DNA from: Lepidodermella squamata
Taxonomy: Eukaryota; Animalia; Gastrotricha
NCBI GenBank assembly: GCA_047495785.1
Contig: JBLDXI010000013.1
Coordinates: 186,001-250,000 of the forward strand
DNA length: 64,000 nt
Reading direction: 5' to 3'
Below the pieces are notes generated by a model, which was given only the letters and a program-made list of their open reading frames with translations, did not search any database and had not been told where the DNA came from. Positions 1,307 through 8,905 of this stretch are shown here, one piece after another; the stretch's first letter is position 1; every line of letters begins with the position of its first letter. Both the position numbers and the translations under genes were made by a program.

Positions 1307-3613
1307 ATGGATAAGGGCAATATATTCCTGAGTATGCAATCAGACCACGATGCCGGTGGCGACATGTTTTTGAGAATGCCAAATGGCGGCGGAAATCAAC
1401 CGCCTGGTGCCCCACCTCGAAAACCCGCTAACAAGCGGCCGCCGAAAAAATCTAGCAGTGGAGGAGCGAATGCGAAATTAAAAGAAGAGGAAATAGGTCA
1501 TCCAACGGACGACATGGATGTGCCACCGGCGAAAAAACTGGCCACCGGTGGGGCAAAGGCGGCCAAGTCAGGCTCATCTAGTAAGAAGAAAAAAGTACCA
1601 CAATCGAAACAGTCCAATGCCCAGCAGTCTGGAATTGCGTCTGCGAATGAACCAGGTGGTGGTTCGAATTCTCAATTTGGCCGTTGGAAGCCCGAGGACG
1701 ACTATGCTCTCATTACAGCCGTTCAGCAAACCTGCGATCTCACCGCTGTATACCTCGGTATTAGATTTTCTGCGAAGTTTTCGCTGAGAGAAATTCAAGA
1801 GCGATGGTACACGCTGTTGTACGACCCAATCGTGTCGACACTAGCCAAGTCGGCGATACAAAACTTGCCAATCGAAGTCATGTGTCGCATAGAGCGTGAA
1901 ACCTTGTTTAGCCGTGCGGAGGAGGCGGTAATCAGCACTGTGCCATCGAATAACCAGTTGGCACCGCCGAACGAAGTGTTCGATCAGTTGATACGTTCGC
2001 ACCCTGGCGTTTTCCACCCCAGTCGTTCAGCATACATGTTGTTACGGCACTGGCAGCGTTTGCGCCGATATCACATGCTGACAGAACAACAGAATCTTCC
2101 GAATCACGAAGTAGATTTACCCGAGCCGTTTTCGGATGTCGAGGACGAGCTGCTTTCAGCTGGACAGGCTGCAGGGCCAGCGGCTAGTAAGTCCGAAGAT
2201 GCGCTGATGCCGTACTCAGCGCTGGCTATTTCTCATCAAAGGCGGCAGATCAGACGGCTCGAAACCGAAGTGAGTGCCTTGAATGCGGTCGCTGAACCGA
2301 TTGTCGGCATAAGCCCGACCGATTTCCACCAACCTCAGACTTTGGCTGTACTTCGCGGCCGAGCCGTTCGGTTCTTGATGCGCACGCCTGAAATAACGAT
2401 CGGACGTAATTCGACATCGCCAACTGCAAAAGCGCCTGATGTACATGTCGATCTATCGCTGGAAGGTCCAGCGTGGCGAGTTTCAAGGCGTCAAGCTGTT
2501 GTCACCATGAAATCGGCTGGGGAATTTTATATCGAAAACGTCGGCCGGACGTCGTTCATGGTCGACGGCAAGCCAGTTTTACCAGGCGCAGGCCAAGTGC
2601 GGCTGCAGAACAACGCTGTTCTTGAAATCGGTGGCTGTCTGCATTTCAACTTCTTGATTAATCCGGATTTGTCAAACCAACCGCCTCAACAGCAGCAGCA
2701 GCAACAACAACAACAACAACAGCAACAGCAACAGCAGCAGCAGCAGTCTCACATGCAACAGTTTCAGCAGCAATCGCAGTTGCAACAACCCCAGCAACAG
2801 CAGCAAACTCCTTCGCAGCAACAGCTACCTCAGCAAGGTCCTCAGATGACCAACCCTGTTCTACATTCAACCGCTCCCTCGAACCAAATGCCACATATGC
2901 AGATGGGTGCTAACGAAAATCCGGTTAGTTGTTTCCAATATACCCCCGCTATTGTAGTAGTTGGACTGTTTTCACCGGAATTGTTGAATTTAAAATCTGT
3001 CAAGCCATTAAATTATTTATTCATTCTGCTTTGATATTCCATGTTGACTCAATAATCTAAATTTTAATATTTCGGATTCCAGCAATATGGCGGGCCGGTT
3101 GGAGTGGTAATGCATGGACAAGCGCCTTATGGCATCAACGCCGTGGTTCAAAGCCCATCGTCGAGTCAAACTGTTATGCAAGCTAACGTGACTGCGATGG
3201 CGAACCCGGCATTTGTACCCCAGCAACTCCAGCAACAACAACAACAACGCCCCGTCTACTTGCAACAGCAGCAACAACACCCGGCTGCTCAACAACAAGC
3301 GCCTCAGCCGTCTCAGCAGCAGCTGCAAGGCATGCAGTCAGGGCCGCACCAGCAATACATGGTCGCTCAGCCGCAACCAGGACAGCAGCAATTCGCGCCT
3401 CAGCATGTGGGTCACCATTTCTCGCCGCCGGTCGGTTCTCCAACAATGACCATGCCGCCGACAAGTTCTCCGCATTTTATTCCGCCAGGTTACCGGCTAG
3501 CGGGGCCCCCTCAGCCGCAGCAGCCCATGCAGCAATATCAGCAGCATGCTGTAAATATGCCGCCGCATCAAATGCTTATGCAAGCTCCTCAAGGGCAGCA
3601 ACACCCGCATTGA
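1307..3613 (+). CDS. MCRS1: Microspherule protein 1 (MCRS1/MSP58): MCRS_N domain, FHA domain and Q/P-rich tail
   Basis: Motifs GRWKPEDDYALITAV...ERWYTLLYDP and FHA region LAVLRGRAVRFLM..ITIGR..VDLSLEGPAWRVSRRQA. An intron at 2924-3082 joins in frame to ORF 3104..3613. Confidence 0.93.
2687..2746 (+). repeat. CAG/CAA trinucleotide tract encoding Q20 in MCRS1
   Basis: Twenty consecutive CAA/CAG codons. Confidence 0.95.
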
Positions 3614-3910
3614 TCGCCGTGTCGCTAATTTTATAGATACTTCACAATTGGCCCTTTGGCTTTTGTGTTTGAGTGTTCAGTCGTGATTGTTGTCCTGTGT
3701 AGGATAAAGCCGGAAATACGATATCTGCTCAATTTTTTCACTCCTCTCCATGGCCTCTAAATTGATCCGAGGCCTCGCATTCAGCCAATTTTACTACTAT
3801 CGATTACTTATACTATCAAAAGACGGCGACAACAATAAAAATGAAGATTTTTTCAATTTCATATTCATGCTTGAGCTCATTCAATTTGAAATAGTTGGTT
3901 GCTTGAATTT

Positions 3911-6900
3911 ATGGAGAACCATGTCCCTAAAGCAACAAAAAGCAGTCGACCAGCGAAACCGGTGGCGTCGGTCGATTTGGTATGAAAACTAGATTATTTG
4001 CATTTTTCATGCAATAGCCAACCGTTGTGTAGAACAAGGCAGCATGGGACACGAATTTGATCACTGGAGGTGGCAATGGTAAAGGCACGGGCGATAAGAC
4101 AGAAGGTCACGAAAAAGCTTCGTCTAGCCTTGGACGACTAGCTATGTTTAAGAAGTTGGCTGAGGCAGCTGCGTTGAAGGAGGGTGAATCTATTCCTACC
4201 CGTGTTGCAGCAAGCCAATTTGCGCGAGGTAAATTCATGGGACCCACTGAGCCGCCTTCGAAAACCTCCTCTGACGAGCCGCTAAAAGAAAGCGGACCAT
4301 TGGCGGAGAAGAATGAGGCTGAGATCCCGTCGATCAATAACATCGATTCAATTCTTGCCGTTTCACAGCCAGTGAAAGCGGAACTAGTTAAACCTGAATC
4401 AGAGACGCCAGAGACCCAACAGGTCATGCCGGTTACTGAGGAAAGTATAGCTGCTAGTGCCTCATCACAGCCAAATCCTCGCCGAAGGCCCTTTTCTGCG
4501 ACTACGACGGACGAATCAGAGCCGAAACATTATCGTGAAATGAATAAAGCCATGTCTGCCTTGTTAGGCGCTCTTTCAAAAGTAGAGCCGGATGTAGAAT
4601 CGCCACCTCGAAAATCGCGCCGTCGCATGGACGATGAAGCATCCGCCATGGATTCAAGCGATTCGGAAGGTGAAAACGATGATACGAGTACTGCTAAAGA
4701 ACCACGTGAGGTGCCCGAAGAGGACGGCCCCATGTCCGGCGAAGCAGACAGTTACGGAGCACAAGGCAAGTGGGCTAACAAGGGAGGGTTCAATAAGGGC
4801 GGAAAGAGTTTCGGAAAGAGGAAGAAAAATTTTGACAAGCCGAATTATCAGCGAATTAATATGCGTAAGAAGTGTTTCACCAAATTTGGTGCGGCGCAAA
4901 CGAATCGGAAAAAGAAAATGCTCAAGTTCCGGAAGCGCTCCAACCGGGCGTCGGCACGCCGCGAATTGGCAGAAGCTGCTGAATGGGGTCTGGATGGCGA
5001 CACGGCGCCGACTCGGGAGGGCGAGAATGCTTCCCCGAACGCTGGTAAGGAGGACCCTTCACAACCCGGCCCATCTACCTCGAAGCAACATCAAGCTGAC
5101 ATTGTCCCACCAGAGTTCAGCATCGCAGTGTTGCCGTCAGAAGCTGACGGGAACGTGAACACTGCTGCATTCAAGGATCGGCTATTCAGTGATCTTAATC
5201 TCTCTGAGCGCCAGCAGAGTGTTGTGGAAGGATTGGCTCAGGGTAAATTATACATATTATTGTTACTTCCGAATTCTCGTTGGTAAAACTAACGCCCTAC
5301 ATTTCTTTTAGGACAAGTTGCTTTCCACCAGCTTACCCCGCCGCCTAATTATAGCGGCTATGAGGGCTGGTTCAACTTGAACGCGCCCTGGTCTAGAATG
5401 GTCGCGGGCTGCGTTGAAATTCACCGCCACACCGCAATGTTCCAATCACAAGGAGCCTCAAGTGAAAGCGGCGCGGTTATTGGCATTGTCGTTCTCTGTG
5501 ATCCACTGTGCCCTCTACCTCTGCCATCGCTGGCTAAAAGCCGGAAGGCCAGCGAAAAGAATGCTGCTTTGTCCTATAATCGTGGTGGCGCCGTAATCAG
5601 TGGTGACATGAGCTCCGATGAAAGGCAAGAGGTGGTCACCAAAGCGAGATGCTGCGAGGTGATTGTTTTAAATCTAAGCTTGATTCGATTGCAACTCTTT
5701 AACTTTTCAGATTAGCTACATCATTTGCCGGCCTGAAATGCTGCTCTCAAGTGACTGGTTTAAACGATCAGGATTGCCGCCAGTTGCTTGTATTTGCCTC
5801 CTCTTTGCCGAGCGAGTCCTACCTGCTCCATGGCTGTCAAACGCTTGTAGCATCTATACGAGCGGTAAAAATAACTTCAGCAACATTCGCGCGGAAACGG
5901 CCGGACTAGTCTGCCGCCTTTATAGCCTCTTCGGCATTGGCACTGAAGGCCAGAGCCTCGCTACGGCCCGTTTACCCCTCCTAGTCGCGTCTACTGTTCC
6001 CGTTGATATTGCTAGCACTGGTTTACTGGGCAAACCGGCTGAGCTGAAATGCGACGAAGACAAAATCTCGTCCAGAAAACAGGTTGCAGTATATTCAGTT
6101 GCGAACAAATTGGCGGCTTGTGGTAAGCTGCTGCTAGCCCTCGTCGAAAAACACTGTCCGTATTCCGCTGTAACTTTCATTTGTGAATCCCCTAACGCGG
6201 CTATGCGGCTCGAGCAACTGCTGCGCCAAGACGGCAACGTCGCCGTATTTTTGAGCTTCGGATGCGGAACAGCAACGAAAAAAACCGCATCCAGCGCGGG
6301 GCCTGGTTCAATTGAACTGACCAGGGTTGCTACTCAGGACGATGTTGTCCAGCTAGCTCTGCAGAACTCGAAAACTTCTAAATCTGATCAATCGGGGGTG
6401 TCAGGACTAAGCGTATATGTGACGTGCATTGAAGTTCTGCCGCACGTTTACTTGTACAAAAACCGAACGCTTTCAACCTTGGAAAAAACTTTTTCGATCT
6501 TTGTGGGATTGCCGCCTTCTAGCGCTCACTTTTCAATTGTCAGTCTGTTCTCAGACGACCGGTGTTGCGCTCTCGTTGATTCCTCAGCTTCGGTTGAGAT
6601 GAATTCATCGCTGCGGTCGCTCTACACCATTTCAGGCAATTTATTTGTGTTGAAACAACTGGTCGAAAGTCTGTTGACTGCGCCTCATGTGCCGCAATCA
6701 TCGACTCGCGACGAATCTCAGCCATTCTGGAAGGCGGTCGATATCAACGCGTTGTCGCAGAAATTCGACTGCCATCCCAGCTTGGTCGTCGGCATAATTA
6801 TGCAGCTATTCAAACGACGAATAGTTGTCGATGTGGCGGGGTCTCGCCAAGACACGTGTTCCGTCCGGCTGTATGGGTCAGATTTCGCTTCAGTCGCGCT

Positions 6901-7687
6901 GTTTGAGGACAACCCGTTGTTGGTTGCGGCGAGACGCGTCGAAGAGGGTGATGCGACTGGTGCTCGAGGCGGCAAAAACACGACTGTGAAAAGCAACCAG
7001 CGATCACTGACGTTTTCCATGTGCGCCGTTGCCAATGAGATGGACCAGCACCCGGACGCCATTCGTCGCCATTTATACCAATTACGCCCTGTCAGTTCTC
7101 ACAGCCAAGCTACGAAAAACTTCTCCAATCGATCGCCTCTAGTCATAACTTTTGCACCCCAGTGGTCCATCCTCTTCAAAGTGGACACGGCTACCCTTAA
7201 AGAAATTGATAGTCTAGTTATGACTGTCGTCAACGAATTCATGCAACAGGAGAAAATTGTTAAAGCCAACAAAGTCGCACTGGCCAGTGCAATTTTGAAG
7301 GCAGGCCAGCCGTTTTCTACCGCTAACAAGCAGCAAGTCGGTTTGCATTTCACCGAAGTTGATTTCAGTGCACGCGACATTGATGATGCTTTCGAGGACC
7401 AAACTCCGAACAGCGAGGCTGAGCTTGAGTCAGCTCGTTTTGCGATTGAAGATCTGATTGAGTCGGGCAATTCTACCTTTGAGCTGACCGGTCGCAAGCC
7501 GTCGCCTTGGTCGATTGCACGGTCCTTACATGCAATAACGATGCCGGGTTTCAGTACCGGCATGGCACAGCGTGCCGACTGGCTGCCAACAATGCGAATA
7601 GCTTCCAGCGATTTTTCGCAAAACATTCATCTGCGCGTTCCGTTTTTAAAACTTGTTGATCTCGCGAGGCAGGCCCTCATTTCGTGA
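3911..7687 (+). CDS. RECQL4: RECQL4-like protein with degenerate helicase motifs
   Basis: Exons 3911-3979, 4033-5242, 5312-5658 and 5711-7687 join in frame. NYQRINMRKK, ISGDMSSDERQEVVTKAR, YIICRPEML, LPPVACIC and C-terminal IARSLHAITMP...HLRVPFLKLVDLA resemble RECQL4 segments in the correct order. Confidence 0.75.
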
Positions 7688-7797
7688 TTTTCTTCCGTCA
7701 TCTTCTCACCTCTTTCTGGTTTTAATTTTCAATGAAAATTTCAAATTTCAATTGTATTTCCTCGGACTAATTTTATAGTTTTTTGTTTTGCATTGTA

Positions 7798-8905
7798 ATG
7801 GAGTTCTCTTTCACCGATGCCGAGTTGCGTATGTGCCAGGATTTTATCATCGGCGTGTCTCTTGAAGCTGGAAAAGTAAGTCTCCGCGATTTGTTTTCGC
7901 AACTAAGCTTAAGGTTGTATTTTTAGATAACAAGTGCTGCCTTTTCCCAAGAGCGGAAATCATTCGCTGAAAAATCGTCTCAATATGACTTGGTTACCGA
8001 AACAGATGCTGCTGTGGAGAAGTTTGTCATATCTGCAATAGCCGAGAAATTTCCGGGTCATCGATTTATTGGCGAGGAGGCCACAGCTAATCAAAACGAC
8101 CCTCTGGCTCGCTTGACAGACGAACCGACTTGGATGATCGATCCCATCGACGGAACGCTGAACTTTGTCCATTGTCACCCAAACATTTGCTTGAGCATTG
8201 GATTTATCGTAAAAAAGCAGGTATAGCCATTTTTATGCCTCTCATGTCTGTTATTAAGTTTACTTTGTAATGTCTAGCCCATCATTGGCGTGATTTATAA
8301 CCCGGTGAAAAATGAGCTTTACACGGCCCGTCTAGGCGGGGGTGCGTATTTCAACGGAAAACCGATTCACGTAACCGATGCAAAAGGTCATACTTCAGAT
8401 AATGGCTTCAGCTTACTTGAACTTTTACTTCTCACAGAAATGCAAAAGAGCTTGTTGATGACTGAATTCGGCACTAATTCAGACTTTATGGGGGAAAAGC
8501 ACACTACTCTTGCGAAAATATGCCCCAAACTGCATGGCATCCGTGCTACAGGTTCTGCGGCTCTGAATATGGCTCTTGTGGCGGCCGGCGCTGCTGACGT
8601 CAACTACGAATTCGGGCTTCATTGTTGGGACATGGTAAATAACTTTTTCATAGTTTGCTTGAGTTTCATGTTTGTTTAATCGAAGGCTGCTGGAGCTATA
8701 ATAGTCCGAGAAGGTGAGTCCATTGCGCATCTGCTTGTTTCAGTTTTTACGGTTAATTTACCCAGCCGGCGGCGTTGTTATGGACACAACCGGTGGTGAC
8801 CTAGACTTGATGAACCGACGCGTGTTGTGCGCTTCGACTCCGGAATTGGCCCATCAGCTGGCTGCACAAATCGACAGCAGCGTCTTCAAGTTTCCTCGAG
8901 ACTGA
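7798..8905 (+). CDS. IMPA: Inositol monophosphatase, tandem copy 1 (5 introns)
   Basis: Motifs [21 protein letters not shown] and HCWDMAAG. Introns 7876-7926, 8221-8277, 8387-8437, 8635-8685 and 8714-8765. Confidence 0.95.

Follow-up and report, generated by a model that had tools for sequence, protein, structure and literature searches.

A highly diverged RecQ4 descendant in the gastrotrich Lepidodermella squamata is probably a stable, ATPase-dead pseudo-enzyme

Can an animal lose the residues with which a RecQ4 helicase handles ATP and still keep the protein at full length? The question is raised by a gene of the gastrotrich Lepidodermella squamata, found at positions 3911-7687 of a 64,000-nucleotide stretch (contig JBLDXI010000013.1, positions 186,001 to 250,000, assembly GCA_047495785.1) that will be called the window. 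A reading made from the sequence alone (the sequence-only reading) had described this gene as a RECQL4 homolog with an intact reading frame but erased ATPase motifs. The analysis presented here indicates that the gene probably encodes a highly diverged RecQ4 ortholog or descendant that has become an ATPase-dead, stable pseudo-enzyme with an ATP-independent role. The catalytic residues are lost, the frame is intact, the gene is under purifying selection and it is expressed in an RNA-like sequencing run. Because the same losses are found in a second species, and because the gene is expressed, spliced and under purifying selection, it is considered a stable pseudo-enzyme and not a dying gene.

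The gene consists of four exons on the forward (+) strand, as are all of its parts given below, that join into a single frame of 1200 residues (a coding sequence of 3603 nt) from the start ATG at 3911 to a TGA stop at 7685-7687. Exon 1 (3911..3979) contributes 23 codons from the ATG, exon 2 (4033..5242) encodes a mostly low-complexity and apparently disordered N-terminal region, exon 3 (5312..5658) encodes the first half of a putative, degenerate RecA-like domain (HD1), and exon 4 (5711..7687) encodes the remainder of HD1, a putative second RecA-like domain (HD2), an R4ZBD-like domain, a C-terminal domain and the stop codon. All three introns are of the GT..AG type and measure 53 nt (intron 1, 3980..4032), 69 nt (intron 2, 5243..5311) and 52 nt (intron 3, 5659..5710). 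The one long spliced frame described by the sequence-only reading is therefore real, and the strings that it quoted are exactly present: QQSVVEGLAQ|G|QVAFHQLTPPPNYSG spans intron 2 and LPPVACICLLFAER is located in exon 4. Splicing was assessed with the contigs of two public runs, X1 and X2. Run X2 is RNA-like: introns 1 and 3 (53 and 52 nt) are precisely missing from its contigs, with the joint of exon 1 across intron 1 present, and its depth is zero at all nine intronic variant sites covered by X1. At intron 2, X2 depth is zero at position 5260 where X1 has coverage, and no listed X2 contig bridges the junction; its support is the open reading frame of the ortholog described below, which is uninterrupted and in register across introns 2 and 3. 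The splices are thus confirmed by RNA-like contigs at introns 1 and 3, and at intron 2 by the ortholog.

A word-index protein search with exon 4 returned one protein, P0001 (1040 residues, E 5e-167, 46% identity), which is encoded on the ENA metagenome contig L001 and is about 46-50% identical to the window protein. The L001 frame has neither intron 2 nor intron 3 and is in register with the window exons, and P0001, as a contiguous sequence, or single exons of the window gene served as stand-ins for the spliced protein in the searches described here. Identity to P0001 is 40% in exon 2 and 61% in exon 3, the highest of any exon. Two further upstream exons in L001 (4410-4541 and 4601-4705; tblastn E 4e-8) carry the N-terminal motifs of the window protein, and the L001 intron at about 4542-4600 falls within the continuous exon 2 of the window. 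Since the intron positions differ between the two genes, introns have been gained or lost since the split. A scan of Joint Genome Institute (JGI) metagenome contigs for more orthologs gave 141 pattern matches, none of which was confirmed.

The catalytic motifs of RecQ4 were then located in both proteins. The former P-loop, or Walker A motif, is placed at 5335..5355, where PTGxGKS is expected and where the window protein reads TPPPNYS and P0001 reads EPPARYH. Opposite VVMPTGGGKS of E. coli RecQ the two proteins read HQLTPPPNYS and CQLEPPARYH, respectively, so that a proline-rich loop with a Tyr for the lysine and no Gly-Lys-Ser/Thr takes the place of the motif. The Walker B position could be fixed by phmmer, which puts D605 of human RECQL4 opposite Leu441 of P0001, the equivalent of Leu31 of exon 4. 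The Asp at position 182 of the 5LST chain (..AFACID) is D605, because the construct comprises residues 427-1116 plus three extra residues in a chain of 693. DEAH (D605-H608 of RECQL4) is thereby replaced by LFAE in both orthologs. The spacing of 24 residues between the RPE of motif Ib and LFAE equals that between APE and DEAH in E. coli RecQ (K-12 record), which provides an independent check on this placement. Motif VI is placed at 6500..6580 (FVGLPPS ... SLFSDDR, against DIPRNIESYYQETGRAGRDG of E. coli RecQ) and has lost its arginines: past GLPPS or GCPPS, the QETGRAGRDG of RecQ is replaced by ..VSLFSDDR.. in the window and by ..NSQFTNDS.. in P0001.

Pattern searches of all exons and of P0001 detected no DExH/D and no R.GR or GR.G, and GK[ST] is absent from exons 3-4 and from P0001. 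Additionally, a six-frame scan of 3600-7800 found no other Walker A or DExH motif, introns included, so no alternative exon or frame in this interval would restore GKS or DEAH. The splices seen in the RNA-like contigs are those of the gene model. Erasure of Walker A and Walker B and the lack of a recognizable motif VI, all claimed by the sequence-only reading, hold for both orthologs. Since the P-loop lysine, the Walker B Asp-Glu pair and the motif VI arginines have been replaced, the protein is not a canonical ATP-driven helicase, and it is predicted to be without ATP-driven unwinding activity. Other landmarks survive in the expected order, namely the motif Ib RPE, the LPPVA strand, IRPET/IRAET, motif III (LITAT in P0001, VAST in the window), a motif IV-like strand at the start of HD2 (VTFICES, 6170..6190, where an alignment useful as a guide puts IFACES of P0001 on IIYCNS of E. 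coli RecQ) and GLPPS. As a separate observation, the only string of the form [AG]xxxxGK[ST] is GFNKGGKS (4786-4809) in the Gly/Lys-rich disordered N-terminus. It is not conserved in P0001, which reads GVKGKGGKK there, and it could mislead a motif scanner.

The best-conserved part of the protein lies within this same region. The block at 5726..5812, which extends from CRPEM (motif Ib, TPE-like) to LPPVACICL-LFAE at the Walker B position and aligns with RECQL4 546-605, is 75-90% identical to P0001 in windows of 20 residues. By comparison, identity is 65-80% in some parts of the R4ZBD, 55-70% in the last 65 residues and 10-30% in the linkers. That the region of the former nucleotide cleft is conserved best is what would be expected of an ATPase or helicase that is still active with non-canonical residues, and intact RecQ4 is itself a weak helicase (PMC5490261). 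However, neither ortholog has the P-loop Gly-Lys-Ser/Thr, the Walker B Asp-Glu or the motif VI arginines, and K508A or D605A alone is sufficient to abolish RECQL4 activity (PMC5490261). An active enzyme is therefore regarded as highly improbable.

The window was compared with the two runs that hold it. The differences comprise 27 synonymous, 2 non-synonymous and 11 non-coding changes (8 of the latter in intron 3), which corresponds to a within-species ratio of non-synonymous to synonymous differences per site (pN/pS) of 0.023, and none of the 12 differences in the helicase-like core alters an amino acid. Relative to L001, pS is 0.79-0.87, which is saturated, and pN is 0.34-0.44. A dN/dS ratio against the ortholog was not computable because of this saturation and the differing base composition of the two sequences. 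The gene is under strong purifying selection and is not decaying. As the synonymous sites are saturated, the motif losses are older than a deep split and have been stably kept since. A dN/dS near 1 had been named as the sign of a decaying pseudogene; what is found is purifying selection within the species and a pN far below the saturated pS between species. The loss of the catalytic motifs and the lack of any Pfam domain match would suit a pseudogene in decay or an assembly error in the gene model, but such an explanation has to accommodate 1200 open codons here and more than 1040 in an ortholog at synonymous saturation, a pN/pS of 0.023 and spliced contigs in an RNA-like run, and it is hardly credible. 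The motif losses, the intact frame and the purifying selection all support the earlier proposal of a catalytically dead RecQ4 kept at full length.

How firmly can the gene be tied to RecQ4? A phmmer search of the PDB with P0001 gave human RECQL4 (5LST) as the best match (E 0.007) over two collinear stretches, with P0001 383-441 on chain positions 123-182 and P0001 814-901 on 555-640. Language-model neighbors of P0001 are clusters with DEAD and Helicase_C domains accompanied by zf-CCHC or Drc1-Sld2 (scores of 0.93-0.96), one of which is named ATP-dependent DNA helicase Q4. This domain combination is the RecQ4 signature and thus points to RecQ4. The neighbors of exon 4 alone are Helicase_C/RecQ clusters (0.92). 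An ESM-Atlas fold search ranked an arthropod RecQ4-type cluster first. A separate observation concerns the top ESM Atlas feature cluster for P0001, which has a representative of 1217 residues, 68 members and no taxa on record; Helicase_C is found in all of these and DEAD is common in none. This cluster could perhaps be another RecQ4-like group with a degenerate first RecA domain.

Structural comparison was based on an AlphaFold2 model of P0001 275-1040 in which the window exons were the sole other rows, and on a poorer model of exon 4, the alignments being of 2-3 sequences. Foldseek ranked 5LST first for the P0001 model, with an E of 1.8e-9 over 695 columns (the next match had 3.5e-3), and also for the exon 4 model (E 0.011; next 0.44). 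VIA-align superposed model residues 440-625 on RECQL4 832-1068 with a Z score of 12.5 and a root-mean-square deviation of 3.5 Å over 181 residues. This Z score was obtained both when the Foldseek matches were looked at again and when 48,161 chains were searched without bias, and no other chain of that search reached a Z of 8; the second-best match by VIA-align had a Z of 6.0-7.7. The R4ZBD of RECQL4 comprises residues 836-1045 plus a bridging helix and has been called unique to RecQ4 (PMC5490261). This RecQ4-specific domain, which follows HD2, is present in P0001 by fold superposition of the confident part of the model. In the L. squamata gene an R4ZBD-like double winged-helix domain with the bridging helix is placed at 6620..7267 by mapping from P0001 707-906, the only confidently modelled part. 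The RECQL4 homology claimed by the sequence-only reading is thus recovered by sequence, by Foldseek and by VIA-align, each with 5LST at the top.

Several results weigh against this interpretation. An exhaustive phmmer search of 1.84 billion representative proteins with P0001 returned P0001 itself and nothing else, so that the homology is invisible to ordinary sequence methods. No Pfam family was assigned to any exon or to P0001, and PDB profile searches with two alignments gave no match. A 36-column hhalign match to E. coli RecQ is in the right place and has an E of 0.23, which is not significant. The mean predicted local distance difference test (pLDDT) score is poor for both models, 39.7 for P0001 275-1040 and 32.0 for exon 4; the databases searched hold two orthologs only, and for this reason the structure models stayed poor. 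The two RecA-like domains are consistent with the 695-column Foldseek alignment and with the RecQ4/RecQ clusters of the Atlas, but pLDDT is below 50 there and Pfam DEAD and Helicase_C remain sub-threshold; because the AlphaFold models are poor, the support for these domains comes from a model of low confidence. Hand alignment was used to place Walker A and motif VI. Finally, Sld2 homology region I was not found, which implies that the full replication-initiation function may be lacking.

Other searches were also negative. Exon 4 by phmmer and P0001 540-780 each gave no match in the PDB, and global pairwise alignment to E. coli RecQ is unreliable and serves as a guide only. One Pfam match was returned, a Helicase_C fragment with an E of 0.05; it falls in the wrong domain and was rejected as a chance match. 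A scan of the window with Rfam detected nothing.

These results bear on the view that the gene has no RecQ4 origin, and that an unrelated lineage-specific protein or another superfamily 2 (SF2) or RecQ relative resembles RecQ4 by chance. The marginal E of 0.007 in the PDB and the low confidence of the structural models speak in its favor, whereas independent methods all single out RECQL4 among 177,000-350,000 chains, the confident part of the model matches a domain exclusive to RecQ4, and the segments that match follow one another in the same order over the full length of the protein. This view is thought to be very unlikely, and descent of the gene from RecQ4 is very likely. Since the catalytic hallmarks of RecQ4 are missing and the architectural ones are present, the protein is regarded as a variant of the RecQ4 family.

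The N-terminal and C-terminal regions were examined for the other functions of RecQ4. Motifs conserved at 4033..4233 (NKAAWD ... SSLGRLAMFKKLAEAA ... RGKF), which are those matched by tblastn in the two upstream exons of L001, do not resemble Sld2 region I, and Pfam searches with the whole of exon 2 and its sub-fragments gave no match to PF11719 up to an E of 10. A basic and aromatic segment at 4822..4995 (NYQRINMRKK ... KFRKR ... AEAAEWGLD) is strongly conserved with P0001 and seems to be a retained Sld2 homology region II, upstream of the position of the RecQ4 knuckle. This likeness was seen by eye, is not statistical, and draws in part on the human sequence. A Pfam search gave no profile support for the region II likeness of NYQRINM[RK]K..KFRKR. 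In Sld2 region II, a conserved Asn (human Asn356) in a predicted strand is followed by a basic and aromatic helix, and the region makes the binding of nucleic acids much stronger (PMC4757822). The statement that no Sld2-like N-terminal feature is recognizable thus stands for region I and appears not to stand for region II. The lack of a recognizable zinc knuckle also stands, as the pattern C..C....H....C matches nothing in any exon or in P0001 and exon 2 holds a single Cys; the zinc knuckle of human RECQL4 is itself degenerate (PMC4757822). At the other end of the protein, a conserved domain runs to the last residue (7490..7684, GRKPSPWSIARSLH ... LKLVDLARQALIS; 55-70% identity to P0001). It may be equivalent, by analogy, to the extreme C-terminus of vertebrate RecQL4, which binds the winged helix of Mcm7 and contributes to the affinity for DNA (bioRxiv 10.1101/2025.08.05.668837).

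Compared with human RECQL4 (5LST; Kaiser et al. 2017, PMC5490261), the L. squamata protein is of similar length (1200 versus 1208 residues) and its parts appear to come in the same order: a disordered N-terminus that includes a basic segment, then the putative HD1 and HD2, the R4ZBD and its bridging helix, and last the C-terminal domain. In both proteins LPPVA forms the strand before the Walker B position, and the R4ZBD, as modelled in P0001, superposes with the Z score given above. The two proteins differ in that identity is only ~15-18%, that other residues stand here at Walker A, Walker B and motif VI, and that a CCHC knuckle, Sld2 region I and a Pfam DEAD/Helicase_C match were not detected here.

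The closest functional parallels are engineered helicase-dead RECQL4 proteins (mouse K525A, Xenopus D856A and human K508A or D605A, the last of which is helicase-dead, PMC5490261). Like the L. squamata protein, they are of full length and without ATPase activity, which here is a prediction; unlike it, they are single-residue laboratory mutants, whereas the changes described here are natural, affect several motifs, occur in two species and are under selection. Engineered ATPase-dead alleles support development and much of replication initiation (PMC6636780; bioRxiv 10.1101/2025.08.05.668837). Mice with Recql4 K525A are normal, and truncations without the helicase and C-terminal parts have effects as severe as those of a null allele (PMC6636780). 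A study of RecQL4 determined that its C-terminus has a role separate from that of the ATPase and that RecQL4 is needed in the absence of Mcm10 (bioRxiv 10.1101/2025.08.05.668837), and MCM10 and SLD-2/RECQL4 act jointly in the activation of CMG (PMC13728148). An ATP-independent role is plausible because K525A mice are normal, because the C-terminus of RecQL4 has this separate role, and because MCM10 and RECQL4 act jointly.

In the mechanism that we propose, the RecQ4 body plan would have been kept, with a disordered N-terminus that carries a basic nucleic-acid-binding segment, two RecA-like domains, the R4ZBD and the C-terminal domain. Nucleotide handling would have been given up with the change of the P-loop lysine to Tyr in a proline-rich loop, the change of the Walker B Asp-Glu to Leu-Phe and the loss of the motif VI arginines. 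The protein would then perform the ATP-independent jobs of RECQL4, docking on the CMG/MCM10 pre-activation complex and DNA at replication initiation through its N-terminal basic segment and its folded C-terminal body. The former nucleotide cleft may have been kept as a structural core or as a new binding surface, and unwinding would be left to other factors. Granted the homology, we put the chances that the protein acts in this way, as a docking factor or scaffold for the CMG pre-activation complex and on DNA, at about even, by analogy with the systems above.

The RecQ4 family has lost its helicase before, in a different way. A study by Gaggioli et al. (2014, PMC3926958) determined that the Sld2-RecQ4 fusion is ancestral and that on several occasions, among fungi, nematodes, placozoans and euglenozoans, the helicase part has been lost or has become separate; C. 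elegans is without a RecQ4 helicase. The stand-alone Sld2/SLD-2 proteins of fungi and C. elegans resemble the present case in that RecQ4 helicase activity has been given up (PMC3926958). They differ in that the whole helicase part was lost or split off there, whereas here the helicase body and the R4ZBD appear to be kept and region I was not detected. The outcome here is thus distinct from the published losses, as the domain appears to have been kept and the chemistry was lost. Yeast Hrq1 and its K318A allele share the RecQ4-family core, and the inactive form still acts through DNA binding. Natural Hrq1, however, is active and lacks an Sld2 part, and its inactive form is harmful and not selected (PMC13586618).

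No account of a natural RecQ4 pseudo-helicase turned up in full-text literature searches. A comparable fate is seen in the inactive C-terminal cassette of Brr2, where the fold of a RecA pair was kept as a protein-interaction platform after the loss of catalysis. Brr2 belongs to another SF2 family, and its inactive cassette is a tandem duplicate within one protein.

The setting of the gene bears on whether this is the only RecQ4 of the animal. The order of an MCRS1-like FHA/poly-Q gene, the RecQ4-like gene and an inositol monophosphatase gene is common to the window and L001, with the upstream gene at 1307-3613 in the window and 1863-4056 in L001 and the downstream gene at 7801-8900 and 7831-8325, respectively. 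The rival possibility is that the gene is one of two copies, the other being an active RecQ4 at another place in the genome, possibly along with a separate Sld2, and that the copy described here is a duplicate that took on a new non-enzymatic role. The repeated splitting of Sld2 and helicase described by Gaggioli et al., including a chytrid with two Sld2-like proteins, lends this some plausibility, although nothing direct supports it. Against it, the gene order is conserved in two distant species, and no assembly yielded a second relative when searched exhaustively with P0001, an active RecQ4 being too distant to score in that search. From the reading of one 64-kb stretch, a second copy is considered unlikely. 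That the gene is instead the sole RecQ4/Sld2-type gene of the animal, and that the lineage has long run on a RecQ4 unable to hydrolyze ATP, is a tentative proposal to which we give somewhat less than an even chance.

Further features of the locus were observed. The ATG of the inositol monophosphatase gene lies 113 nt past the stop codon of the RecQ4-like gene in the window, a gap that looks like that of an operon. An AG (..aaatag|ttgg..) is found 17 nt 5' of the RecQ4-like ATG (3880-3911), and the AATAAA of the upstream gene lies ~55 nt before this AG; the layout would fit spliced-leader trans-splicing. The 52-nt intron 3 (5659-5710) holds 8 differences between the window and X1, and 29 are listed for the 3.6-kb coding sequence.

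The importance of the RECQL4 ATPase in vivo is debated, and the present gene bears on work on Rothmund-Thomson syndrome, on the K525A mouse and on CMG activation by MCM10 and RECQL4. A natural RecQ4 without ATP-handling motifs but with a selected, folded body separates the catalytic from the non-catalytic role, and it suggests that what the helicase/R4ZBD/C-terminal module does without catalysis matters enough for selection to preserve it by itself. Evolution would then have made a counterpart of the "helicase-dead" RECQL4 that has been built deliberately in the laboratory. The former motif Ib-II block, some parts of the R4ZBD and the extreme C-terminus are the conserved surfaces and thus the places in which to look for this role. 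The gene would also add a missing intermediate to the published series of repeated losses and splittings of the helicase part. If it is the sole copy, the body formed by HD1, HD2, the R4ZBD and the C-terminal domain would have an essential and selectable task apart from catalysis, such as docking on CMG/Mcm7 or on DNA during helicase activation, and the gene would represent, in a living animal, a stage between the ancestral fusion of Sld2 and RecQ4 and the state of nematodes and other lineages that have discarded the helicase.

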